This document shows positions 36,121 to 63,300 of a stretch of 64,000 nucleotides of DNA, in pieces; within the stretch, counting starts at the first letter, position 1, and every line of letters begins with the position of its first letter. This DNA comes from Tubulanus polymorphus (lineage: Eukaryota; Animalia; Nemertea): the NCBI RefSeq assembly GCF_964204645.1, contig NC_134032.1, positions 14,806,275-14,870,274 of the forward strand, in the 5' to 3' direction. The position numbers and the translations under genes were made by a program. The notes below the pieces were generated by a model. That model was given only the letters and a program-made list of their open reading frames with translations. It ran no database searches and was not told the DNA's origin.

Positions 36121-37228
36121 ACTTTGTTAAAATTTGACTTTTTACCCTGAACTAGTTCCGACTGTGCAGTCCTTAGTTGTGTGAGCAGTCAAATAAACAC
36201 CAGTTAAAACATTTTGTCTCAACTAATTATCCTCTGATTCGTTAGTTTCACTTGTGTCTCTCAGTTGAAGTGTTCGTGTTATGCTTGAAGATGTAGCTTA
36301 AATTGTTTTGAGAATCAACGAAATTGAAATCAATGTAGAAAACTAATGTTTGTATAAAAATTGGTCTCATTTCACTTGTGTATTATATGATATTTCAGTG
36401 AATGATTTATGGCTTGAGAATAAGTTGCTTTTTATAATTCATCGATGATACAATGAAATTAAATGATCATTTTATTTTATTTTACATACCCGTGTGTATA
36501 TTTATTTGCTGCAAAATAAATTATTATAGGCTTTGAAATTGGTTAAGATTATGAGAAAATAAATGAATTATCATCAAGTTGAGAAACTAAGTCGTCTTTG
36601 TTTTATTCATTCGTGTTTGGAGGATGTATTTGTAATAGGCGTCCATTGGTTACTCAGGGGCCAGTTGCTGAATAGACGGTTAGACTTAGGTTAGATCATC
36701 ATTTAGAGCACTTAACCAGATTGACAATTAAAGTTGGAATTGTTTATCCGCCTGTTCTCTAGAGCAATGCATCCTCTGACCTCTTGGAATGGGTGGCGGG
36801 GCTCGAGTCGGGGGCAGTTTGTTGGCATTATGTCGAACATTGCTTGACACACTGACGTCACTCAAAAAATAATTGGTTCTAAGCAACACACAGTTTAAAA
36901 TCTCAGTGTGTCCCTCTAGTGTGCCATAACATGATAACAAAGGCCCAGCAAAGAACATAGACAGATGTAAAATCAATACGGAATTCGCATCCTCATATTT
37001 TCTGTTATAAGGGTGCTTCTTTCGTTTTTTGTATTCTAAATTGTATTTTTGGTTCTTATGTAATTAAATGTTGAAATAAATTGAATATTGAATTGAATTG
37101 AATTTTTCTTTTCGTCATATCCGCACTAAACACAGTAGTGATTGAGTTTAAAGGCGCCGCTGTTGTTAACTGATGAAATTACGCCCGTTTTATCCTCGTT
37201 TTACTGCATAAAATGATATAGATCGACG

Positions 37229-39703
37229 ATGGTTTTATTGAGTAAGTTATTTTCAAACTACCGAACATTTGAATTTATTACAATAAAGCCCGTTTAATGA
37301 ATTAAAACGAATTCAAGTTCGAATTTTCCCGATGAATCATCGATTCTGGGTTCGAATCCCGAATATTGTAAATATTTATTTTTGAATGTTTATTTTGTAG
37401 CTGTTGACGTTATTTCGTTGGTGTCTATCGTTCGCCAGGCAAATCTACACGATATCAAATACGTTAGATTTGGTAAGGGTTTCGGTCAATTTTTTTATTT
37501 CAATTTTAATTTAAGTCTGTTCTGAATCGACTGAGACTGAGTGAGTCGGACAATGATTGAAGAAATCAATGATGTTGTTTTTTCAGAATACGCTAATGAA
37601 AAGTTGATTCACGATTTGAAAAAAGACGAAACTTATTTAGATGAAGTTGTTAAATTTGCTGAGGACGCCACCTGGCAACACTGGGCCGAATTACGACAAT
37701 CGGATCAGGGTAAGTTGATTTTACTTCTGGACATTTATTTCTTCATATTTTTCAAAAATTTTAAACCAGGCCCCACTTTTCTTTATTTGACCTTGACCCC
37801 TCGTTGTTTTCCAGTGTCCGAAGACCCCAAAGTCGATTCTCAAACCGGATCCGCATCCGACGTCGCTGTGGAAACCGTAACCGATAACGAGACAACAATG
37901 GTTACCGGTAAATCTCCGATTAAAATGGAACACGTCGTGGAACCGACGAATGAGGATATTACCACGGCGACTAGCGAGGTGATTATCGAGTATCCGCCCG
38001 ATCACAACAATATGGAGGTCGACGACGACGGTGAACTGGTCGATGACGCGGTCGATGACGCGGTCGACGACGCCGTCGACGATGAGGTCAAGAGAAAAGC
38101 GGCGAACGTCCTGAAATATCTCGGACAAATCGATGAAAATTTGAAACAAGAAGCGCCGGACTCGGAGGAGGAGGAAGGAGAGGATGGCGAGGAGGAAACC
38201 GGTCGATCATTAGAGGACGTCAGTCGAGTTATCGACCGATTGAAGTTATTCGAGTGCGAAATCTGCGGCGATACGTTCCTCACCGAGGACGGATTATTCA
38301 GCCATTGTCGCGCGGGAGGTTGCGAGGATCGAGACGACTCTAAACCGTACTCATGTCACAAGTGCGACCGTCGATTCATCAGTAAATCATCGCTCGGGAA
38401 ACACCTGCGCATGAATCGCTGTCCGAACTCCGAGGAGTACAGTACTCGGCGTAAAACGAAGAAATGGTACAACCTGAGCTCGGATATCGTCGAGGCGATG
38501 CGAGCCGACGGCAACAATGAGAATAACGAGGCCGTTAAACTAGAAACCGGACAGGTGAAGATCCTAACCGATAATACGTGTCGTCTGTGCGGGAAAGTGT
38601 TCTCGTCGCGGTGCGCCGTTCAAAAACACCTGCGCATGTTCCGCTGTAAGAAGATCAAAGCTATGAAACCGTTCGAGCAAAACGAAGAGGAAAGATCGTT
38701 CTGGTTAGAGGATAACGACGATGAATCCGACGAGAACGACGAGGCAGACGGCGTGAAACGCGTACAGTGCGGATTCTGCGAGGGAATCTACCCGACGATG
38801 CGTAAACTGAAGCAACACGTCCGATTCGATTGTCCGAAGGCGCCGAAATTCAAACCGAACGTCGACGTCGTCGAGAAGGTGAAAACTCCGTGCGATTTGT
38901 GCGGTAAAATTCTCAGCTCGCAGCGTAGCCTAGCGACGCACGTTCTGCGCACGCACAGTCGCAATCCGAAACCGTACACGTGCGACACCTGCTCGAAGGG
39001 TTTCCTAACTCGCGCGCATCTCAAACGTCACATGGTCGTACACGGCGCCGAGCGGGAATACCCGTGTTCGTTTTGCGGTAAACGTTTCGCCGAACAGTCG
39101 GGCAGACGTAAACACGAACGTCTGCACACTGGCGACCTGCCGTATCTGTGCATGACGTGCGGTAAACGATACAACGATATCGGCAGCTATAATCGATGCC
39201 TAGCGCGACACGAGGGCAGCATCGAGATGTACCCGTGCGATTTCTGCGATAAGATCCTCACGTCGAAGGGCAACAAGAAAAAACACGTCGATCACGTGCA
39301 CCTGCATCTGAAGTTGTACTCGTGTTCGACGTGCGGGAATTCGTTCGCTTCGAAGCAGACGCTGAATTCGCACGTGCGCAGTATTCACACGCTCGAACGC
39401 GAACATGCGTGCGATCTGTGTCCGAAATCATACGTCACGCGCTGGCAGCTGCAGCAGCACGTGCGCGTCGTCCATATCGGCGAACGCTACCAGTGCGCGC
39501 ACTGCGAGAAACTCTACACGAATAAACAGAAACTTTACAGTCACCTGCGTAAGGTACACGCGGTCGAACCGCTCGAGATCGGCGAGTTGGAGGACGGCGA
39601 ACAGGACGAGCTGACCGAGGAACCAGTCGCCGAGGAGCAAGTCAGAGTCGCAGCGGAACAACAGCTTATTATAGAACAGACCGTCGAATCGAAAGATGAT
39701 TAA
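37229..39703 (+). CDS. Multi-zinc-finger protein 1 (4 C2HC + 8 C2H2-type fingers) with uncharacterised N-terminal module
   Basis: Exons 37229-37241, 37401-37472, 37587-37709, 37815-39703 (all phase 1, GT-AG). Tandem CxxC..HxxxH fingers with a HTGDLPY linker. The first exons were inferred from splice signals and homology with the second ZNF gene. Confidence 0.88.
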
Positions 39704-39865
39704 ATCAGTTTAAGAATCGTCTATAATTAAACGAGATGATGATGATGATTCTGAATTTATTTATTTCCCTGCGAGGAAAATCAGGGAACCGCCGACCCAC
39801 TTCTTGGTAATCAGGAAGCATACGGGGGATTTTGGATTCCCTGGATCTGTAATAACCGTGTTAAA

Positions 39866-39913
<48 letters not shown>

Positions 39914-41344
39914 CTGTAGATTTGTATATAGCTTCAACAAAAGGAGAGGTTTTGTTCGATAAAGAGAATTATATTTTTTCCATAGATTCGCAATTTCTTC
40001 ATCAACAAGTTTGTAATATTTGAAAAATGTCGCGATGTTGCAATGTTACCGATATTTATTCGATACTTTGTATATATTGATTAAAACTAATATGTTATAT
40101 CTGAACTATGTATTTTAACAATGGGTTTATTATAATGTCTTGATATTTTGTGTGTAAACGATTGTGTACATATGTACATTGTACATAGGATCTTAGTGGT
40201 GGAAGGAAACTATATCTATGAATGCTGGTGAACTCGTTTATTTTACCAGATTTCATTGTCCGAACGCAATTTCATCACGTTTACTGGTTAGAATTTCATT
40301 TGATGCTAGCAGAGCTGTCAACTATTCCTGATCATCAGTATTTGTGTAACACTGACTCTTTCATAACAAGAAATACTGATTTGATGTTTGATATGTACAA
40401 AAATATGCGATATGTTACTGAGGGTCTTACTGTTGATTACTGATTAATTTGAACAGAAATATGAAAGATGTTATTGAGGGTCTCAATGTTGATTACTGAT
40501 TAATTACTGGTTTTCTTTCACTCAAAAAATTAGATTTGTTACTGATAAGAGTTTTTCAGAGGTTGACAGTCCAGTTGCTCAGAGTTGGTTCGTGAAAGTT
40601 GAAATAGTGCTAATTGAAATTTCATTGTTACTATGGTATTCATCTGCCGGTTTTCATTAACCAACTTCTGAGCTACTGACCCCTGTACTAGTGTTAAAGG
40701 GCGTGAACTAATTCTAACTGACTGTAAATTTTATTTAATTAACCGCGCGACTGTACTCCAGGGGCCAGTTGCACCGTTGTGGTCTTAAATCTTGAATTGT
40801 TAAATTGGCTATAGAACTAAGTTGGTCTTGGACTGGTCTCAAGTCTAAGCCATGACTAAGCAACCGACCTCAGCTGTTTAACCAGCACTGACCTTACCGA
40901 AGTTATCATCCCAACTATGCATGACTTCAACTCGAGTTTCACTATATGTATTTTCTTATCACATTTTTTTGCGAGTTCAAATTGTTGGTTGTTTTATTGG
41001 AATCTTTCACTAGAAACTGAAGAAATCGCGTTGTGTGGGTTTTTTTTCACGTGTATATTTCTAATACAGTAAAACTTACTTCGTTCTTGTTTTTCAATCC
41101 GGATTTTCATTTAATTCCGATTGAATATTTGCTCCATTTTCGTGGAACCCTTTAATCTATTATTCATAATTCGGATTTTACTAAATTTGTAGAAATCTGG
41201 GCGCGGTCCTAGTGATCTGAATTACAGTGAGTTCTACTGCATTATTCTGCAAATTGAACCAATAAAATATTCAATATTATTCAATTGTGAATTTATATTT
41301 TCTTTAATTTTTCAAGGATTTTTATATTCAATCGTTTTCTTCAA

Positions 41345-45839: not shown

Positions 45840-48800
45840 TTAGAATATGTCCATATCGTCCGGAGCGTCAAGGTCGCGATATTCGATTATCTGACGCGGA
45901 TCTTGTTGACGTCTGCAAAAGAAAACGGAAAAAAAAAAAATTAATTCGATTTTTCGACCGACCGATGTTCGGATTTCTCTCAATAGATGGCGCCGTTACT
46001 GACCTCGAACCTCTCATGTGAGGATATGTTTGTCCTCGTCTGTGCATTTTATCTCGACCACCGAACGGTTCCCGGTCGAATCCACCTCCAAATGATTGAC
46101 CTCCTCGACTCGTAGCTGAAATCACAAACATTTTAAAATCAATTATTATAGATTCATTTCACAACTTTTGGAACCGCGCAGTTTTTGTGAAAATCCAACA
46201 AAGGAAACAAATTCAACACTACAAGTCTAGTAAATGGTCCTAAATATTTGATTAGATCATGTCGTCTTAAGTCATTCGGCGGACGCGCATTTGAGACATT
46301 TGCATCTACAGTGTGGAACCTCTCCGTGATATTGACTCTCTGCCAGCATTCAAAGCACAGCTCAAGACATTTCTGTTCAAGTCACCATCTTCGTCTGGAG
46401 AGCGCCTTTGATAATAGCCCTGCTATTTACAAGGTGCTATAGAAATTTACAATCCTATCCTATCCTATTAGTCATATGTAAGTTAAACCTTTTAACTTTA
46501 GTTGATGACTTATCCACGTGACTTACAGTTAGCGAATAGAATTGGGAATAGAAATTAGGACTAGAAATGATGACTAGATGACTAGGAGAAATGATATCAG
46601 TTATGTGACGACTTTATCCGAATTATGACTTAAACTTATTAAATTGAATTAGAAATACAAATTGAGACTCAAAAATAGACATGACTTCACTTATGTGACG
46701 ACTTTATCCAAATGACGACTTACACTTAGTGAATTGAATAAGAAATACAAATTGGGACTCAAAAATAGACACGACTTCAGTAATGTGACGACTTAAAGTT
46801 TGACAGCACGACTTATGCAGTATTTCCGGCTTATAACGTGCTTCTGACTGGGTTTAAGTGTAGCAGTATTAATAAAGAGATACCTTGTTTTCTGAACGTA
46901 CGCAGTCCTCCTCCGGCTCCTTGCATCGAGCGTTGATTATACCCGCCTCCGGCGGACGGAGGACTCGATTGTTGCGCCGGTTGTTCTCGCGGTTCTTTCT
47001 TTACCGTGTTGCCGGGATGTTCGGGCAATAGAGGGCGCTTCGGATCGAATAGATAGTTGTTGAAAAATGTCACCTGTAAAAATTAACCGATACCATGCCA
47101 TGCCGGATCACCGTATATAATAGGTATTCTGAAAGCATGCTATGCCGGTCGACCGTACTCACCACTTGTTTAACCTCCTCTATTTTCTCGCCGTGTTTGT
47201 TGAAGATGTGTTTCCGCACAAAGTCGGGACCTTTGAATTTTTTGCCGCTCAAAGGACACAGCCATTTGTCTTTAGCCATTTCCTGTGTGTTCGCTGTTAC
47301 GAACTTTTCGACTTCAGTGAGAAATACAGTTAAACGAAATAACACACGCGTACATGCTTTTTTTTTCACATGAAACCACTGAAAAACTACTTATAACCTG
47401 AAACCTGAAATGAGTAATTTGATGATGTCATAGGGGAATTAATGGAGGCAGACATATTTTCTGGAAGTGTTTACATTATAATTTCACTGATAGGTAAATT
47501 GATGATGTCATATGGGGATTTCATGAAGACAGCCATCTTTCTAGAATTCAAAATCAACAATTTGATGATGTCATAGGGGGATTTCATGAAGACAGCCATC
47601 TTCCTAGAATTCAAAATCAACAATTTGATGATGCATTGGGGTATTTATGGAGGTAGACATCTTTCCTGGAAGTGCACATTAATCAAATCACTAATAGGTA
47701 ATTTGATGACATCATAGGGGGATTTCATGACGACCGCCATCTTTCTAGAATTCAAAATCAACAATTTGATGATGTCATAGGGGGATTTCATGAAGACAGC
47801 CATCTTTCAAGAATTCAAAATCAACAATTTGATGATGCATTGGGGTATTTATGGAGGTAGACATCTTTCCTGGAAGTGCACATTAATCAAATCACTAATA
47901 GGTAATTTGATGACATCATAGGGGGATTTCATGACGACCGCCATCTTTCTAGAATTCAAAATCAACAATTTGATGATGTCATAGGGGGATTTCATGAAGA
48001 CAGCCATCTTTCTAGAATTCAAAATCAACAATTTGATGATGTCATAGGGGGATTTATGGAGGTAGACATCTTTCCTGGAAGTGCACATTAATCAAATCAC
48101 TAATAGGTAATTTGATGACATCATAGGGGGATTTCATGAAGACAGCCATCTTTCTAGAATTTAAAATCAGTTAATCAACAATTTGATAATGTCATAGGTG
48201 GAATGAGAGGTATTTAAGATGATAAGTAAAAGGATATGCCTCGATATCTTTCAGCCCTAGTTTCAGAGCCTCTGCCGTATCTAGTTTATCTTTGTAATTC
48301 ACAAACGTATCGATCTTGTTGCTGAACGTGTTCAGATATTCATTTACTACAAAAATACAAAATACAATTTCAAAATACTGACAAAATCACGCGGGAAAAA
48401 GTTTCAAGTTAAAACAAGTCTATGAAACCAGAATTAAAACGAACACCAGCAAGAATAAAGTTAAAACTGGAGCCAGTTACTCGAAAGTTGGTTGGTTAGA
48501 GTTAAACCAGCAGATAAATACCATTTCATATACTGTGTCAAATGCATTTGGATTGTTATCGTGTCCATCGGTTAACTTACTTTAGAGCAACCAGCTCCTG
48601 GGGCCAGTTGCATAGTCATGGCTTAGATTTAAGACTTGTCTAAGACCAACTTAGTTCTATAGCGAATCTAACAATTTAAGACCAGTGTTAAGATTTAAGA
48701 CCACTTTTGGACTTAAGTCAAGACTGTGCAACTGGGCCCTAGGATCCGTAATCAAGACTTAAGTCCAAAAGTGGTCTTAAATCTTAAGACTGATATCTTA

Positions 48801-51800
48801 GGTCTGTTAATCGGGCTCTAGAACAAAGTCGGTCTTAAGTCTAACCCATGAGCATGGAACCGGTCCCCCCGGTTTATAGAACCGGCAACTGTAACGTACC
48901 GTCGGTTTGAGTGAAATTGCCCGAGGTTGGTAGCGGCCCGCGGGCGTGTATGATACCGCATCGATGAGGCATCTCATCCTCGTTCGGGTACTCGGATGCG
49001 CTGTAATAATCCAACGAGTAAACTACTCGTAAATACAGAATCAATCGATCTAAAACCTGATTCAACTGCGGCTCGTGATCGATCGCTATTTCTGGATTTT
49101 CTTCTTTCGGTTTGTCGTCGACCGGTTGCCCTTTTAATAAACGATAACAAAATCATTAAACATTAGAAAATCAAATGGCATTAGAAAGTGGCCGAGTCAG
49201 ATTCGACGATCATTCCTGAATAAGGAGTTTTCAAGGAGAAAATTTCAAATTTCAAGGAAGCATCTGCATCATATTCATATTGCATATAAGGAGCTTTGAA
49301 GGAGTTTTAAAGGAGAAAATTTCAAATTCGACACCTATTAAGGCATAGTTTACTGTACCACTTGTCACAGGTTTCGTACAGATCAGCCATTCCGGGATGA
49401 ACCGCAAGGCAATGAGTTTTGAAGGGGTTTTAAAGGAGAAAATTTATAATTTCTAGGAAGCTTCTGCATCACGTTCATATCCCAATTACTGTAGACTCCT
49501 GCTAAATCAGTTCCGTTTATCTCAGTGAAACATTTAATCTGGTGGCTTTTGTGAGCAAAATTTCATCCTTATACACTAGTAAACTCTGTTTCTAATTACG
49601 TAACCAACTAATTGGGTATAAAATCCTACTGTACAACTACAAACATTTCTAATTGCCTGTTTCTCAAAATTGAAGTTGTGGGAATTTTTGTTCAAATCAA
49701 AGGAGTTTGGAGCATTAAGGTAGCATCATGTGGCTGGGTCTTCCCTAGGGGGCATAGGGAGGTAAGTGGCAGAGTCTACTAGGGAGGAGGGGGAGGTATG
49801 TGGCAGAGTCTACTAGGGAGGAAGGGGTGTTACTTACCCAATAATTCCTCCTCTTCATAACTTCCCTCTTCAACTAAATAATCAGTGATGTTTTTCAAGA
49901 CGGGATTCTTCGAAACCAAACCAAACGTCTGCTTATAAAACACAATCATCATTCTAACAAAATCTCTTTACTTTAGTTCATTCTTAAAAGTTATCTCTCT
50001 TTTTATACGTTTAATATGTTTTACATCATTTTCATGCATTTTGGAGGTGAGGGGACTGCTCCTGACACTGATAGTGGAGAGTACTGCTCCAGGTACACAG
50101 GTGGTGAGGGGACTGCTCCTGACATTTGAAGGAGGGAAGAGGACTGCTCCTGACATTCAAGAACAGAGGACTGCTCAGGGTACTCAGGAGACCGCTCCAG
50201 GTACTGACAGGAGACGAGGGCACTGCTCCTGACACTCAAGGGCAGAGGACTGCTCCAGGTACTCAGGAGGTGAGGGGCCTGCTCCTGGACAGTCAGAGAG
50301 GACTGCTCCGGGTACTTGGAAGGAGACTGGTGCCGATACTCAGGAGGTGAGGGGCCTGCTCCTGGACAGTCAGAGAGGACTGCTCCGGGTACTTGGAAGG
50401 AGACTGGTGCCGATACTCAGGAGGTGAGGGGCCTGCTCCTGGACAGTCAGAGAGGACTGCTCCGGGTACTCAGAAGGAGACTGCCGCCGATACTCAGGAG
50501 GTGAGGGGCCTGTGCCTGTCATTCGACAGAGGATGGACTGCTCCGGGTACTCAGAAGGGGACAACTCCTACCTGTTTACCGGTATCTGTTTTCTCCTCTT
50601 CCTCCCACAGTTTCCACTTATTGTCGAAAGCCTGAATGATTTTCGCAGCGTTTTTCACGTCTTGTTTAACGATGTGTTTGTGAACGGCGAGACCGCTGAC
50701 GAAACGAACTCGTTGTTTTAACTCGCGGTTTACGATCGCTCCCAACTCGCATTCGCGTAACTACAATTCAAATCAACACGTTTCGTAATGCAAACAATAG
50801 ATGGCGTCTGGGTGAGGTTTCGTACTAAGACTAAACTACCTCGTATCTCTCCATTGTTATAATTTTCACCAAAACGTCAAAAATTGAAGTTTTGATTGAA
50901 AATGAACTAGAAATTATTCCGATTTAGAGAGGAGTATCTTTTGGTATTTTTGGGATCAGTAATTGAGGATTCAAAAACAAGTAGAAATTAATAACCAATA
51001 ATGATATACAATTCCTTATATAGCGTGGTTCTAAATTCTTAACCACTTAGCTACTCTCAAATAGTAGACTTAGGTCGAGGAATAGCACACCCTACGAAGT
51101 GGGTTTCTGATTAGCGAGGCACTGTGAGGGGCAATGTGAGGAAACGAGGCGCTGTCAGGATGAACTCTTTGAGACGCAGATCAACGAAGGCTAGCTAGGT
51201 AGAACACACTTTACGACAAGAGGGGAAGTAGGTGAAGCTGGTCTAATGCGTAAGAAGGGGGGGAGGGTTACTTATGATCATACTTTACAACAAGGGGGGT
51301 AGTAGGTGAAGCTGGTCTAATGGGTAAGGGGGGGAGGGTTACTTATGATCATACTCTACGACAAGGGGGGTAGTAGGTGAAGCTGGTCTAATGGGTAAGG
51401 GGGGGGGAGGGTTACTTACGCGAATATTATTGAGATTCCAGCAGATATCTTTAATATTAACCGACCGATCGAATGTGACCCAGCCACGACGGAAGAACCG
51501 GCGTTCCGGCTGCGGGTCTTGTAACGCCACGCGAATAAATCCCGGATAACGTTTACAAACCTGAAACACAAACAACCAGTAGGTCATAGACGATTCAATC
51601 ACTAGGGGGCGCTGGTGAGCGTCCGCTAGGTGGCGTTACTTACAGCTTCGACCTCTGATTTCGTGATACTAGGAGCGAGGTTTCTCAGGAAGATCGACGA
51701 CGTTCGATGAAGTTCTTTCGGAAATTTCTGTTTTTCGGTGTCGACATCTTTTTCATCGGAATCCGCTGAAAATGGAGAGAAATAATTCACCGAGTTTTTG

Positions 51801-54800
51801 AATTTTTCAACTGTTTTTCTTGTTGAATTTAAATTTTTAAAATTTTCCGATTGAATTCTGACCTTCGTTTTCTTTTTTCGCAACCACTTCACCGTCCTCG
51901 GTGTCACACGACTCTTTAATAGCTGTTGTCGCCGTGGTTACCGCAGGTGGATTCTCGGTCGGTGTATCTGCTCCGTTAGTTTGCGATTCTACACCAGGTG
52001 GCGCCGGTTCGTTCGGGTCGGAGTTGGACTCGGATCCGGATTCCGATCCGGAACCCGTGTCGTAGTTATACTCGGATTTATCTCGTTTACGTTTTTTGCC
52101 CGTTTTTTTGCCGTCCGTTTCATCGATATCGGTAGTCGTCGTCGGCGACCCGTGCTCGGACGTCGTCGGGTCTTTATTCTGAAGAAATTCTCGAGCTTTT
52201 TTTATGATCTCTTCTTGAACCGGGGACATCGCTTTATCCTAACATACAAATACATACATCATCTTACAATTCATTTTACACTTACTAAAAATGTTTCAAA
52301 ATATCATTTTAAGAACCAGTTCCACAGTTCAGAACCCAGTTCCACAGTTCTAGATCCAGTTCCACAGGTCAGGACCCAGTTCCACAGTTCTGAACCCAGT
52401 TCCACAGTTCAGGACCCAGTTTCACAGGTCAGGACCCAGTTCCACAGTTCAGGACCCAGTTCCACATTTCTGCATCCAGTTCCACAGTTCAGGACCCAGT
52501 TCCACATTTCTGCATCCAGTTCCACAGTTCAGGACCCAGTTCCACATTTCTGCATCCAGTTCCACAGTTCTAGATCCAGTTCCACAGTTACTGGATCCAG
52601 TTTCACAGTTCTGGACCCAGTTCCATAGTCCTGGACCCAGTTCCACAGTTCTGGACCCAGTTCCACAGTTCAGGAGTCAGATCCACAGTCCTGGACCAAG
52701 TTCCACAGTCCTGGACCCAGTTCTACAGTTCTGCATCCAGTTCCACAGTTCTAGATCCAGTTCTACAGTTCTGGACCCAGTTTCACAGTTCTGGACCCAG
52801 TTCCACAGTTCAGGAGTCAGATCCACAGTCCTGGACCAAGTTCCACAGTCCTGGACCCAGTTCTACAGTTCTGCATCCAGTTCCACAGTTCTAGATCCAG
52901 TTCCACAGTTACTGGATCCAGTTTCACAGTTCTGGACCCAGTTCCACAGTTCTGGACACAGTTCCACAGTTCTGGACTCAGTTCCACAGTTCAGGACCCT
53001 GTTCCACAGTTCAGGACTCAGTTCCACAGTTCAGGACCCTGTTCCACAGTTCAGGACCCAGTTTCACAGTTCAGGACCCAGGTCATAACTCTGTCTGCTG
53101 AACTTTAATTTTCAATTTTCTAACTAAACATAGAAGATACGAACCTCAGGTTTAGAGTCGCCAGTCTCATCTGCTGCCTCTTTCTGTTCAGACTCTTCGG
53201 TCTCTTCTTCCGGTTTAGGCTCAGACTGAACAAATGCCCTGAAATACACAATATACACTGCAGGTGGCGCTGCAAGCAATACGCACATTGCCGGATCCAC
53301 TTCCACATGATCCACTTCCACAGTTGCGGGCAAATATTTATCAAAAACTGGGTTCAATCCAGATAAGAAAATCCAACATTATCAACACTATCATTATCAA
53401 CACTAACACTATCATTAATTCCCTGACCCTCATAATACTGACCCGCTGTATTTTTTGATATCTTTAGCACATTCAGCGCTGTGACGTTGAGACTCTAACT
53501 GTTCCTCGGTCATATCCAACACTGTCAAATCGTAATCATCACCACCTTCTAACAGTATCACAACTACAAATATACAATTATCATCATCATCAAAGATGGC
53601 CGCCTATATTCAATCCTCCTATGACATCGAATTATCGCTTTAGACATGTCCATGTAAGATGGTTGCTACTATAAGTACCCCCTATGACATCACAAAATTG
53701 CCTAATACATGAACACACTTCTAGAAAAGATGTATACCACCATAAATCCTCCTATGACATCATTTATTATCAGTTCCAAAAAGATGGATTTCTGTGAATC
53801 GCGATATTGTCGTTTATAATCCAGTCACCCAGCAAGCGCCCCCTATCTGAGACAATCGAAACTTACCGGCGTCTAAGAATCTAACGATTTTATCGACGCA
53901 ATCGTGATCTAAAGAATGTCCGTCGATGAACCCTTTATCGACGAGGTGTTGGAACACTTCGACGCGACGTTTCAGGACGGCGCGCTGGTCCTCGTGACGT
54001 TTCTCGCATTCCTCCGGGTGATACTTCGCTTTAAACCTAATAGAGGGAGCCACCGAAATAGAGAGAGAGAGAAAGAAAACAGACATCGATGAAAACAAAG
54101 GTTCGGAAAAAATGATCCCTCAATCTACAACGGAATCTACCTGGCACCCCCTCCTCCCTTCCTCCCTCCCCGCCAAACCTTTCATACATTTACAAACTCT
54201 TTTAGCACTGTTACGTATCTTACCGTTTATCGACCAATCAAATCCACTTATTATATATCGACGGCATTATTACGGTTGCCACGGTTACGCGCGTTTACAC
54301 GAATGTTCGTTTTGGAACATATATTTTTTCGACCCTAATCTAAGCTATAACTTTTACTGATTTCTAATGCACTGCATTGTGCGCAGTGCCCTAAACTAAT
54401 AACGGACGGACGGACGGTCGCTAGCGCGGACGATCCACGATCTATCTTCTCTCCGTTCCAACTCGTCGACGGCAACTCGCTATACGTATATATACATATA
54501 TATATATATATATTGGTTTGTACGTATTTTTGTTTAACGCAGCTGTGGACAAAAGTGATTTTTTTAAAAAACGACATCAAGCAAGCAGAAAAGATAGAGA
54601 GAGAGAGTGAGCGTGCACACTTTCATTACAAATACACGCCTATCTTTAAATATCGAATGGATTGAGTCCGGCGTATTTTGTGCGTTTTCGTATCAAAAGT
54701 GTGCAGACCTTGAAACAAAAACAAAAATATCGATTAATATGAAATTAATATGAATAGGGATTCTAGACATTTCCCCACAGTCAAACCTAGTTACTACAGT

Positions 54801-58631: not shown

Positions 58632-61600
58632 ATGGTTCTTCTGGGTAAGTAAATTTGAAACATCTATTTTAAATGAGTATATATTTCCTATGAATTTGGG
58701 TTTCCACTGCAGGGCATAGTAGGGGTTACTCTCTCTAAACTTTAGTTAGTCTCATTGAAGAATCTACGACTACCTACGAAACCATGACGCCAATAAATAA
58801 GGTCAAATTTAAATATATTGTACATATTCCTAAATAACTGGACTAAATTTGATTATATTTAAGGTTTAGAAGTTTCCTCGGTTCAGGAACTGGTTGAGAA
58901 CGCGAGTGGCTCCAATACAGTGTATTTTGGTAAGCGGGTTGTTTGTGTTTATGTGATTGTAGATTTTCCTGATGATCAGCCGATTGTTGTTTATGTGATT
59001 GTAGATTTTCCCGATGATCAGCTGATTGATTGTTTTTATGTGATTGTAGATTTTCCCGATGATCAACTGATTGGTTGTTTAGAAGGCAATCTACATGTTC
59101 TAGACTCATTGATCAGTAAAGTGGATGATGTTACTTGGCAACGCTGGAATCAACAGAGAACAATGGCTTCCGATAACACAGCGCCGACAGGAGACTGTAC
59201 CGGTTAGTAACCCTGTTCACCCTTCTCAGCCTGGACCCTGTTCACCCCTCTCAGCCTGGACCCTATTCCCCCCTCTCAGCCTGGACCCTGTTCCCCCCTC
59301 TCAGCCTGGACCCTGTTCATCCCTCTCAGCCTGGAGCCTGTTCCCCCCTCAGCCTGGACCCTATTCCCCCCTCTCAGCCTGGACCCTGTTCACCCCTCTC
59401 AGCCTGGACCCTATTCCCCCCTCTCAGCCTGGACCCTGTTCCCCCCTCTCAGCCTGGACCCTGTTCATCCCTCTCAGCCTGGAGCCTGTTCCCCCCTCAG
59501 CCTGGACCCTATTCCCCCCTCTCAGCCTGGACCCTGTTCACCCCTCTCAGCCTGGACCCTGTTCACCCCTCTCAGCCTGGACACTGTTCACCCCTCTCAG
59601 CCTGGACCCTATTCCCCCCTCTCAGCCTGGACCCTGTTCACCCCTCTCAGCCTGGACCCTGCACCCCTCTCAGCCTGGACCCTATTCCCCCCTCTCAGCC
59701 TGGACCCTGTTAACCCCTCTCAGCCTGGACCCTGTTCACCCCTCTCAGCCTGGACCCTATTCCCCCCTCTCAGCCTGGACCCTGTTCACCCCTCTCAACC
59801 TGGACCCTGTTCACCCCTCTCAGCCTGGACCCTGTTCACCCCTCTCAGCCTGGACCCTGTTCACCCCTCTCAGCCTGGACCCTGTTCCCCCCTCAGCCTG
59901 GACCCTGTTCTCCCTGTCAGCCTGGACCCTGTTCACCCCTCTTAGCCTGGACACTGTTCACCCCTCTCAGCCTGGACCCTGCACCCCTCTCAGCCTGGAC
60001 CCTATTCCCCCCTCTCAGCCTGGACCCTGTTAACCCCTCTCAGCCTGGACCCTGTTCCCCCCTCTCAGCCTGGACCCTATTCCCCCCTCTCAGCCTGGAC
60101 CCTGTTAACCCCTCTCAGCCTGGACCCTGTTCCCCCCTCTCAGCCTGGACCCTATTCACCCCTCTCAGCCTGGACCCTATTCCCCCTCTCAGCCTGGACC
60201 CTGTTCACCCCTCTCAACCTGGACCCTGTTAACCCCTCTCAGCCTGGACCCTGTTCACCCCTCTCAGCCTGGACCCTATTCCTCCCTCTCAGCCTGGACC
60301 CTGCACACCTCTCAGCCTGGACCCTGTTCACCCCTCTCAGCCTAGACCCTGTTCACCCCTCTCAGCCTGGACCCTGTTCACCCCTCTCAGCCTGGACCCT
60401 GTTCATCCCTCTCAGCCTGGACCCTGTTCACCCCTCTCAGCCTGGACCCTGTTCCCCTCTCAGCCTGGACCCTGTTCACCCCTCTCAGCCTGGACCCTGT
60501 TCACCCCTCTCAGCCTGGACCCTGTTCCCCTCTCAGCCTGGACCCTGTTCACCCCTCTCAGCCTGGACCCTGCACCCCTCTCAGCCTGGACCCTGTTCAC
60601 CCCTCTCAGCCTGGACCCTGTTCACCCCTCTCAGCCTGGACCCTGTTCACCCCTCTCAGCCTGGACCCTGTTCCCCCCTCAGCCTGGACCCTGTTCACCC
60701 CTCTCAGCCTGGACCCTGTTCACCCCTCTCAGCCTGGACCCTGTTCCCCCCTCAGCCTGGACCCTGTTAACCCCTCTCAGCCTGGACCCTGTTCACCCCT
60801 CTCAGCCTGGACCCTATTCCTCCCTCTCAGCCTGGACCCTGCACACCTCTCAGCCTGGACCCTGTTCACCCCTCTCAGCCTGGAGCCTGTTAACCCCTCT
60901 CAGCCTGAACCCTGTTCACCCCTCTCAGCCTGGACCCTGCACCCCTCTCAGCCTGGACCCTGTTCACCCCTCTCAGCCTGGACCCTGTTAACCCCTCTCA
61001 GCCTGGACCCTGTTCACCCCTCTCAGCCTGGACCCAGAAATCCACTCAACTTGGTCCCAGCACCCCCATCCCTTCTGACTGAACCCTGCACTTGTCATTC
61101 GCTGGCCCCTTTATTTTATGAGGTGTGATTTTATCTGTTACAGATGAACAGCAGCAGCAGCAGCAGCAGCTACAGGGATCAGGACAATCAGACATTCACA
61201 GCAACATACTGAAATATTTAAACTCTGCATCGCTTGCCGCAGCAGGTCGCGGTACTCCATGCGTCCTTGACGATAATAAAAGCGCCGCAGTAACCGCGGA
61301 CAACGACGACACGAACGACGCTTCGCAATTCAAACATAAAGAACTAGTAGCGCCATCTGACGGTGAATTCATTAGCAAAGAAGCAAGGGAACGCATCATA
61401 GAAATTATTATCGAACCGTTTAAAGGTACGGAGCTGGTGTACACTCCATATCAGTTTAACCCTTTCTTTGCTGTTACGCTTATTTCACCCAGTTCATATC
61501 AGTTTGTAAAATACTTTTGGAGCAAAATTTGGTTGTCATTTAGTCAATTAACTCAATTGAAAATGAATAAAGTTAGCCCCCGGGTTAAAGGTAATACCAG

Positions 61601-63300
61601 TCTATAAAACCGGACCCAGGATATTTTAGAATTTAATCGGGGAGTTTTTTGGCTAACATTTGATTAGTATCAGTGTGACCCTTAAATAACTGAGGCGGGT
61701 TGCATAGTCATGGCTTAGACTTAAGACAAGTCTAAGACCAACTTTGTTCTATAGCCGATCTAACAACTTGATACCAGTTTTATATATATTCAAACTTAAC
61801 AATTCAAACTTAACCGTTTTAGGTATAAACTTTTTCGTGAAACTGGGCCCTGATCTATATTTGATTGAATGTCTCTCTTGTTATCGAGGTTTGTTTTTGT
61901 TTGTTTCAGAGATGAAACAGAAAGAGAAATTACTCGAGTTATTGGCAAGTAAAGAGAACAGTTGTGTTTGTACGGTTTGCGGGAAAGGTTTCGCTTGGCG
62001 CAGCATTCTCGAAAAACACATGACATCGCAACATCCCGACGAGACTCAGACAAAACAGGAGCACTCCGAGATGGAGCAGACCGAGTTGGAGCATATCGAA
62101 AATGAGCACGTTGAAATGGAGCAAACCGAATTAGAGACCGACGAATCATCAACAATGAAAACAGTTTCGGAGCGGATAGAATCAACTGTTTCCGATGGCA
62201 ACGTGTCCGAACTTACAAACACGCGCGCAACAATGAAACCGACGGTTACCGCGGTGACCGCAACTAAGTCGAATCGACGTAAAATATCGAAATGTCAAAT
62301 TTGCGATGAAGAATTCGCGGAATCGAAACAATTGTCGAATCATTTACGAATCGAGCACAAAGACGAATCGTCGCGTTACGAGTGCGAATTCTGCGATCGA
62401 CGATTCACGAGAATCGATCATTTCAAGTTGCACGTAATGAATCACACGGGATTCCGACCGTTCATCTGCGAGTTTTGCGCGAAGGGTTTCAAAACGCGAG
62501 CCGAACTGAAGAAACACATGTTGAAACACGAAACGTCGGGTGGACCGTTACAATGCGAGTATTGCGAGAAAACGCTGTGGCGCCGCGAGAACATGGATCT
62601 ACACATGAGAACGCACACCGGCGATAAACTATTCAAGTGCGGCGTGTGCGATAAACTGTGGACGACTCGTCACGCGTTGAAACAACACGAACTGACGCAC
62701 ACCGATCATAAACCGTTCGTCTGCGAACACTGCGGTAAAACCTGCTCGAATAAAGGTAATCTCGGTAAACATATCGCGTCGATGCATCCGCCCGAACTGT
62801 TCATAGAGGGCGTTACTAGCGAATCGTCGAGCGGCGATTGTTCGTTCGCGTGCGACGTGTGCGGAAAGTCGTTTTCGTCGTTGGCGTTGGCGACGCGTCA
62901 TATGGAACGGCACACGGCGGTTAAAAAGCACCGATGCGACGTGTGCGCGAAATCGTTCTCGTCGAAGCACACGCTCGCGACTCATATGCAGCTACACGAC
63001 GGCACGCAGCCGTTCGTGTGTGCCGTGTGCGGTAAGGGTTTCTCGAGACGGCAGCAGCTCACGGAACACGTTATGTTGCACACCGGTGAACGTCCGTTCC
63101 CGTGTTCCACGTGCGAAAAACGCTTCACAACGGCGGCGAAACTGAAGGTACACGAGCGTGTGCACACCGGCGAAAAACCGTTTAAATGCAGCGTGTGCGG
63201 TAAGGCGTTTAACCGAGCCGATAAACTCACAACTCATTATAAACAAACTCATAAATCTGGTGTTCAGAATGCTGTCGAAATGTATATAGCTTATGAATAA
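58632..63300 (+). CDS. Multi-zinc-finger protein 2 (12 C2H2 fingers) with the same N-terminal module as ZNF gene 1
   Basis: Exons 58632-58644, 58864-58929, 59050-59202, 61144-61425, 61910-63300 (all phase 1). TGEKPF/TGERPF linkers. Head-to-head with SRRT. Confidence 0.88.
59211..61035. repeat. 26-bp minisatellite (~70 copies) filling ZNF2 intron 3
   Basis: Unit cccctctcagcctggaccctgttcac; starts 8 nt after the donor at 59203. Confidence 0.95.

Follow-up and report, generated by a model that had tools for sequence, protein, structure and literature searches.

Two C2H2 zinc-finger genes, here called ZNF1 and ZNF2, lie on the plus strand of a 64,000-nucleotide (nt) window of the genome of the ribbon worm Tubulanus polymorphus (Nemertea; assembly GCF_964204645.1, contig NC_134032.1, positions 14,806,275 to 14,870,274; all coordinates below are those of the window unless a contig is named). 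They are probably divergent members of a Tubulanus-limited transcription factor family whose proteins carry a new N-terminal domain of some 45 to 50 residues that would serve as a shared protein-protein interaction module. The domain is encoded by small exons spliced to the part of the gene that encodes the fingers, recurs throughout the genome, stands at the very start of the proteins that carry it, and matches no known domain.

The ZNF1 coding region is divided among four exons. A 13-nt microexon (37229..37241) encodes MVLL plus one nucleotide and ends at a gtaagt donor. Next come a 72-nt exon 2 (37401..37472), a 123-nt exon 3 (37587..37709) whose peptide matches the family profile and has D.TW.HW at its end, and exon 4 (37815..39703), which holds an acidic linker, about 11 C2H2 fingers (Pfam zf-C2H2), and the stop codon. 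In both ZNF1 and ZNF2, all introns in the domain-coding part are of phase 1. Contigs from four public sequencing runs were mapped onto positions 36700-40300. A single 642-nt contig from run X2 contains three GT..AG joints (37241>37401, 37472>37587, and 37709>37815), all at the predicted boundaries, and its start at 37141 assigns at least 37141..37228 to the 5' untranslated region (UTR). Run X5, from a study other than that of X2, also contains the joint 37472>37587, and one of its contigs, which starts at 37401, has loose 5' letters identical to the last letters of the microexon. Coverage in run X1 continues unbroken through the ZNF1 introns, and this run resembles genomic DNA. The exon coordinates, phases, and peptides are those given in a preliminary description of the window, made from the sequence alone, and the RNA-derived contigs of two studies bear out the expression and splicing of ZNF1.

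Intron 3 of ZNF1 (37710-37814, 105 nt) contains no stop codon and keeps the reading frame, such that a transcript retaining it would encode 35 more residues. Because of this, the track of open reading frames (ORFs) represents the region as a single 720-amino-acid (aa) frame beginning at 37541. The transcribed 5' UTR also contains a two-codon upstream ORF (ATG ATA TAG, 37213-37221), located 8 nt upstream of the start codon.

ZNF2 begins in the same manner, with a 13-nt coding microexon (58632..58644, MVLL plus one nucleotide), a 66-nt exon 2 (58864..58929), and a 153-nt exon 3 (59050..59202) that matches the family profile and has D.TW.RW at its end. Its linker occupies an exon of its own (exon 4, 61144..61425), and about 12 C2H2 fingers recognized by Pfam, followed by the stop codon, are encoded by exon 5 (61910..63300). 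The RefSeq protein XP_074656905.1 (P0016 in our set, "uncharacterized protein LOC141910087" of T. polymorphus) has an N terminus identical to the spliced ZNF2 peptide predicted earlier and maps back onto the window as five exons, matching predicted exons 1 to 3 exactly. The predicted splicing, along with the coordinates, phases, and peptides proposed for these exons, thereby agrees with an annotated protein.

Two features of ZNF2 concern its repeats. The acceptor of exon 3 together with the first 28 nt or so of the exon is tandemly triplicated (58943..59080, plus strand; a 45-nt unit present 3.1 times according to Tandem Repeats Finder), with all three copies in frame, and the last copy is the acceptor used by the RefSeq model (P0016 maps from 59049/59050); the other two acceptors lie upstream of it, near 58960 and 59005. 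Intron 3 consists almost wholly of a tandem array (59210-61035) comprising 74 copies of a 25-nt unit with 91% matches.

A six-frame search of the 268-Mb genome with the ZNF2 exon-3 peptide identified 37 places, 36 of them besides ZNF2 itself. From 22 copies we built a profile of 37 positions spanning the exon-3 core (alignment A1, whose seed includes both ZNF1 and ZNF2), and a six-frame genome search with this profile returned 50 places at an E value of ≤0.01, with 48 at ≤2e-4. Exon 3 of ZNF1 scored 53.2 bits (E = 9e-12), and that of ZNF2 scored 63.9 bits (E = 4.5e-15). The number of genomic copies is thus about 50 rather than two, and the notion that the window simply contains two old paralogs was rejected. 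Seventeen of the 50 copies form a cluster on contig 8 (11.41-11.64 Mb), 3.15-3.35 Mb before the window, and the remainder are scattered over contigs 1-5 and 7-11. Within the cluster, the core shows a synonymous divergence (dS) of ~0.09 and a ratio of nonsynonymous to synonymous divergence (dN/dS) of ~0.4, values from which only a recent duplication, with some constraint on the copies, can be read.

The consensus of the core is V.E..L..CL..H...LD.IV..ADD.TW.RW...R, with a signature of CL..H.D.LD.IV..(A/V)DD.TW.RW...R. Across the family alignment, W39 and W42 never vary, and D28, D35, T38, and R46 hardly do. Two gene layouts encode this core. In genes of the cluster type, a single exon (MLLLEGVEVHV.ED...) holds the entire domain, and many of the dispersed genes join a 13-nt microexon (MVLL, MLFL, MVII, MILL, MPLM, and others) to the core exon across a phase-1 intron.

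The presence of exon 2 distinguishes the window genes from most of the family. The preliminary description had proposed a three-exon module of 65 residues, but most family members have no sequence at the exon-2 position. Conservation therefore extends over the MxLL start and the exon-3 core but not over the entire 65 residues, which places the size of the family domain, as judged from the alignments, at about 45-50 aa; the possibility that exon 2 forms part of the conserved domain was rejected on the same grounds. In a FastTree phylogeny of the 37-residue cores, ZNF1 and ZNF2 form a single clade (support of 0.90) with the copies C3:6446071, C8:6572836, and C2:5365836. All five of these genes are dispersed; ZNF1 has the longest branch and is more distant from ZNF2 than the C3 and C8 copies are. 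A candidate 66-nt phase-1 exon, similar in pattern to exon 2 of the window genes, is present in the C2 copy, and the gene encoding P0018/P0020 has a 35-residue insert where exon 2 sits in the window genes. The extra 66- to 72-nt phase-1 exon, situated after the MxLL start and before the helical core, is best described as an insert specific to this five-gene subfamily and outside the family core. What the window contributes beyond the genes of the cluster is a subfamily that has diverged and carries an extra exon, along with ordinary genes that have a single finger array.

Direct comparison of ZNF1 and ZNF2 leads to the same division. Their exon-3 peptides are 31% identical over 36 aa without gaps (BLASTP E = 1e-7), and none of 5,000 shuffles reached the score of this alignment. 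BLASTP finds no match between their exon-2 peptides, and the corresponding shuffle test is marginal (P ~ 0.03), such that the nearly gapless alignment originally described for the spliced peptides holds for exon 3 but is only marginal for exon 2. The finger arrays are 24-29% identical in several registers, which is the generic level for any two C2H2 arrays. The linkers had been described as completely diverged, but both contain an N(V/I)LKYL motif: NVLKYL in ZNF1 (38105-38122) and NILKYL in ZNF2 (61203-61220). In P0011/P0012 and the genes of the contig-8 cluster, a related AQNVLKAVKRRRG lies ~40-60 residues past the domain. This type of linker motif may represent a second functional element, e.g., a nuclear localization or docking motif.

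The domain occupies the extreme N terminus of the annotated proteins, with the profile match starting at residues 6 to 12 in most of them. Nearly all full-length models among the 27 representative proteins recovered by the profile (see below) open with methionine and three mostly hydrophobic residues, as do ZNF1 and ZNF2, which both open with MVLL and both carry zf-C2H2 families. C2H2 fingers are present in 21 of the 27 representatives, in numbers ranging from 2 to 24 per protein and with many members having only 2 or 3, and one representative (P0019) contains a homeodomain. In P0003, P0004, P0005, and P0025, which are proteins or isoforms, Pfam recognized no DNA-binding domain. The finger-less P0025 (XP_074656892.1) additionally has a C-terminal region, residues ~250-385, without a Pfam match, which could be a further unrecognized domain.

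Searches for a relationship to known domains returned negative results at every level. Pfam gave no match at an E value of ≤10 to either the domain exon peptides or the 22 core peptides, and at ≤0.001 it recognized only DNA-binding families in the 27 full-length proteins. A profile search of all PDB sequences yielded only noise (best E value, 0.39). We also aligned the family profile by hhalign against N-terminal alignments of natural ZAD (A5) and BTB (A6) zinc-finger proteins and against one KRAB-bearing and one SCAN-bearing N terminus, and the probabilities were 0.2%, 0.1%, 1.5%, and 0.3%, respectively. In the ZAD alignment, C12, C15, C61, and C64 are invariant, compared with a single, partly conserved cysteine in the Tubulanus domain. 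The unlikeness to ZAD, KRAB, SCAN, and BTB stated in the preliminary description is confirmed by Pfam and hhalign and by the missing ZAD cysteines. No paper on nemertean zinc-finger head domains, or on a domain of this kind, was found in the literature, and the paper that named FiNZ describes it as unique to cyprinid fish and does not mention Nemertea (PMC10547256).

AlphaFold2, supplied with the family alignment, models the 56-aa unit as a hairpin (strands 2-4 and 7-9) and three helices (13-22, 24-32, and 36-52), with a predicted local distance difference test score (pLDDT) of 82.8 and a predicted template modeling score (pTM) of 0.53. In the model of ZNF2, the three core helices have pLDDT values of 86-92, and the portion encoded by exons 1 and 2 has values of 44-66. 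Foldseek found no match to the domain model in the PDB, and SCAN was absent from the fold matches. The ESM Atlas offered template modeling scores below 0.5 by shape and nothing usable by features, and VIA-align gave only weak structural neighbors at noise level, mostly small helical dimerization modules.

The taxonomic range of the domain appears to be narrow. Among 1.84 billion representative proteins searched with the profile without a word filter, only 27 matched at an E value of ≤0.001. Twenty of these were looked up, and 19 are RefSeq "uncharacterized protein" models of Tubulanus polymorphus. The exception, P0021, is a 78-aa ORF on a 1,066-nt contig of assembly GCA_044232415.1; its best match in the genome of the window (copies at contig 7, 17.71 Mb) is only 75-79% identical, indicating that P0021 originates from another genome. 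Short ORFs with the domain, from any source, were also sought through a word index, and P0021 was the only one returned. When full-length ZNF2 was used as the query, the matches were generic C2H2 proteins, none with the domain, and none of 119 non-Tubulanus zinc-finger proteins that were fetched scored above 2.4 bits, whereas no family member scored below 36 bits. The protein collection does contain proteins of Lineus longissimus. On present data, these sequence searches place the domain in Tubulanus or its close relatives alone.

Since the searches for known domains, the splicing of the domain exons to the fingers, and the copy number did not speak against it, the initial reading of this module as part of an undescribed invertebrate zinc-finger family stands: the family is real and its domain matches none already known. 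It is, however, not a family of zinc-finger proteins only, given its homeodomain member and the proteins or isoforms with no recognized DNA-binding domain.

How the domain functions is best considered in terms of the architecture of the proteins. It starts at the initiator methionine, with three mostly hydrophobic residues that are often encoded by the 13-nt phase-1 microexon, and continues into the helical core, thereby joining one constant unit to very different DNA-binding parts, be they 2 to 24 C2H2 fingers or a homeodomain. That such a head would act in protein-protein interaction is suggested by its being a small folded N-terminal unit with unrelated DNA-binding partners, by the existence of carriers that lack a DNA-binding part, and by its occupying the place that BTB has in lola-type genes. 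Self- or hetero-association, the role that BTB or ZAD has in insects, is by analogy the likeliest single mechanism, albeit one that we propose tentatively; the pointers to oligomerization are the BTB-like position, the carriers without a DNA-binding part (P0003, P0004, P0005, and P0025), the many members with 2 or 3 fingers, and the helical dimerization modules among the noise-level structural neighbors. Docking of a common cofactor, as in KRAB, ranks next, with repression an unlikely outcome and activation a considerably less likely one. The tryptophan pair and R46 (spaced i, i + 3, and i + 7) and the D..T before helix 3 may, judging from the model, serve in core packing and helix capping, and they do not discriminate among these mechanisms.

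Recruitment of a common corepressor by an effector of the KRAB or FiNZ type, with fast-evolving finger arrays that silence transposons, would account for a domain that is N-terminal and acidic (mean net charge of about -4 up to the W..W motif), for the long arrays of 12-24 fingers in some members, and for a tandem cluster that duplicated as recently as its dS of about 0.09 implies. But the family comprises only about 50 genes and not hundreds, many of its members have 2 or 3 fingers or a homeodomain, and neither Pfam nor hhalign detects homology to KRAB. In a family this modest in size and with so many short arrays, an arms race of the KRAB kind is less probable than was first supposed, and we regard this explanation as improbable. 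Activation would instead require that the acidic-aromatic DD.TW.RW stretch contact a coactivator. Acidic-aromatic composition is typical of activation motifs, and the two invariant tryptophans are indeed flanked by acidic residues; however, disorder is usual for activation motifs, and this one falls within a helix that is predicted with confidence as part of a folded unit. In addition, the i, i + 3 spacing of the tryptophans with an arginine at i + 7 suits a packing face, making this account quite doubtful. Least probable is that the domain belongs to a described family but has diverged so far that the searches missed it, in view of the lack of any Pfam, PDB sequence, or fold match, of hhalign probabilities of 0.1-1.5%, and of the absence of the four ZAD cysteines.

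Several points also weigh against the view that the window genes belong to a Tubulanus-limited family with a shared interaction head. The co-occurrence of the domain with fingers was established on the 27 representative proteins and not on all 50 loci, and the splicing of ZNF2 is taken from a RefSeq model. The taxonomic restriction derives from annotated proteins and a profile of 37 positions, with which distant spiralian relatives could be missed, and one carrier of the domain, P0021, comes from a different assembly. Finally, the conservation of the polar residues could have structural reasons alone, e.g., a helix cap and a salt bridge. An interaction head in a family limited to Tubulanus nevertheless remains the explanation that we favor.

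Comparisons with established head domains place this one among known architectures while setting it apart from each of them. Like ZAD (PF07776) of the insect ZAD-ZNF genes, which mediates dimerization (PMC12649048), it is lineage restricted, N-terminal on C2H2 proteins, encoded by an exon separate from the fingers, and found in tandem clusters; unlike ZAD, which has a zinc-binding fold with four invariant cysteines, it is shorter and has at most one conserved cysteine. It resembles BTB/POZ (PF00651) of the lola/mod(mdg4)-type BTB-ZF genes in being a constant N-terminal module on short C2H2 arrays, but BTB is an alpha/beta fold of about 100-120 residues, and the Tubulanus domain has no Pfam match. 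The KRAB domain (PF01352) of tetrapod KZNFs is likewise a small acidic N-terminal module, encoded by separate exons that precede one large finger exon; there is no sequence or profile similarity between the two, the Tubulanus family is about ten times smaller, and no TRIM28-type link is known for it. Both FiNZ and KRAB are acidic N-terminal modules (PMC10547256), and FiNZ of the cyprinid ZNFs is, in addition, a short and lineage-restricted sequence that is unlike known domains and was first recognized from genome sequence. It differs by description, being a 28-aa motif of about 700 zebrafish genes involved in transposon control at zygotic genome activation (PMC10547256). SCAN (PF02023) is also an all-helical N-terminal module and serves oligomerization in vertebrate ZNFs, but it has about 84 aa and five helices. 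Whether the ribbon-worm lineage evolved its own partner domain, unrelated in sequence and predicted fold to BTB, ZAD, KRAB, SCAN, or FiNZ, for ordinary multifinger genes like ZNF1 and ZNF2 and for genes with many interchangeable finger exons is a proposition that we consider evenly balanced. If it did, the design in which a constant interaction head is combined with a variable DNA reader would have an independent origin in a spiralian phylum.

Lineage-specific head domains such as KRAB, ZAD, SCAN, BTB, and FiNZ define the workings of the largest class of animal transcription factors, and none is known to have been described for Nemertea or for most other spiralians. The domain provides a handle on about 50 uncharacterized T. 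polymorphus genes and ties the ordinary zinc-finger genes of the window to those of the contig-8 cluster. As a well-conserved and confidently modeled unit of about 50 aa, it is directly testable for dimerization or cofactor binding. Should it prove to act in oligomerization or repression, the same architectural solution would have one more independent instance.

ZNF1 and ZNF2 were originally described as a tandem pair, but they are 21 kb apart and are not neighbors, because the gene for SRRT/ARS2, the serrate RNA effector, lies between them on the minus strand (47070-54098). Within this gene, Pfam recognizes ARS2 at 47073-47369 and SERRATE_Ars2_N at 53817-54098.

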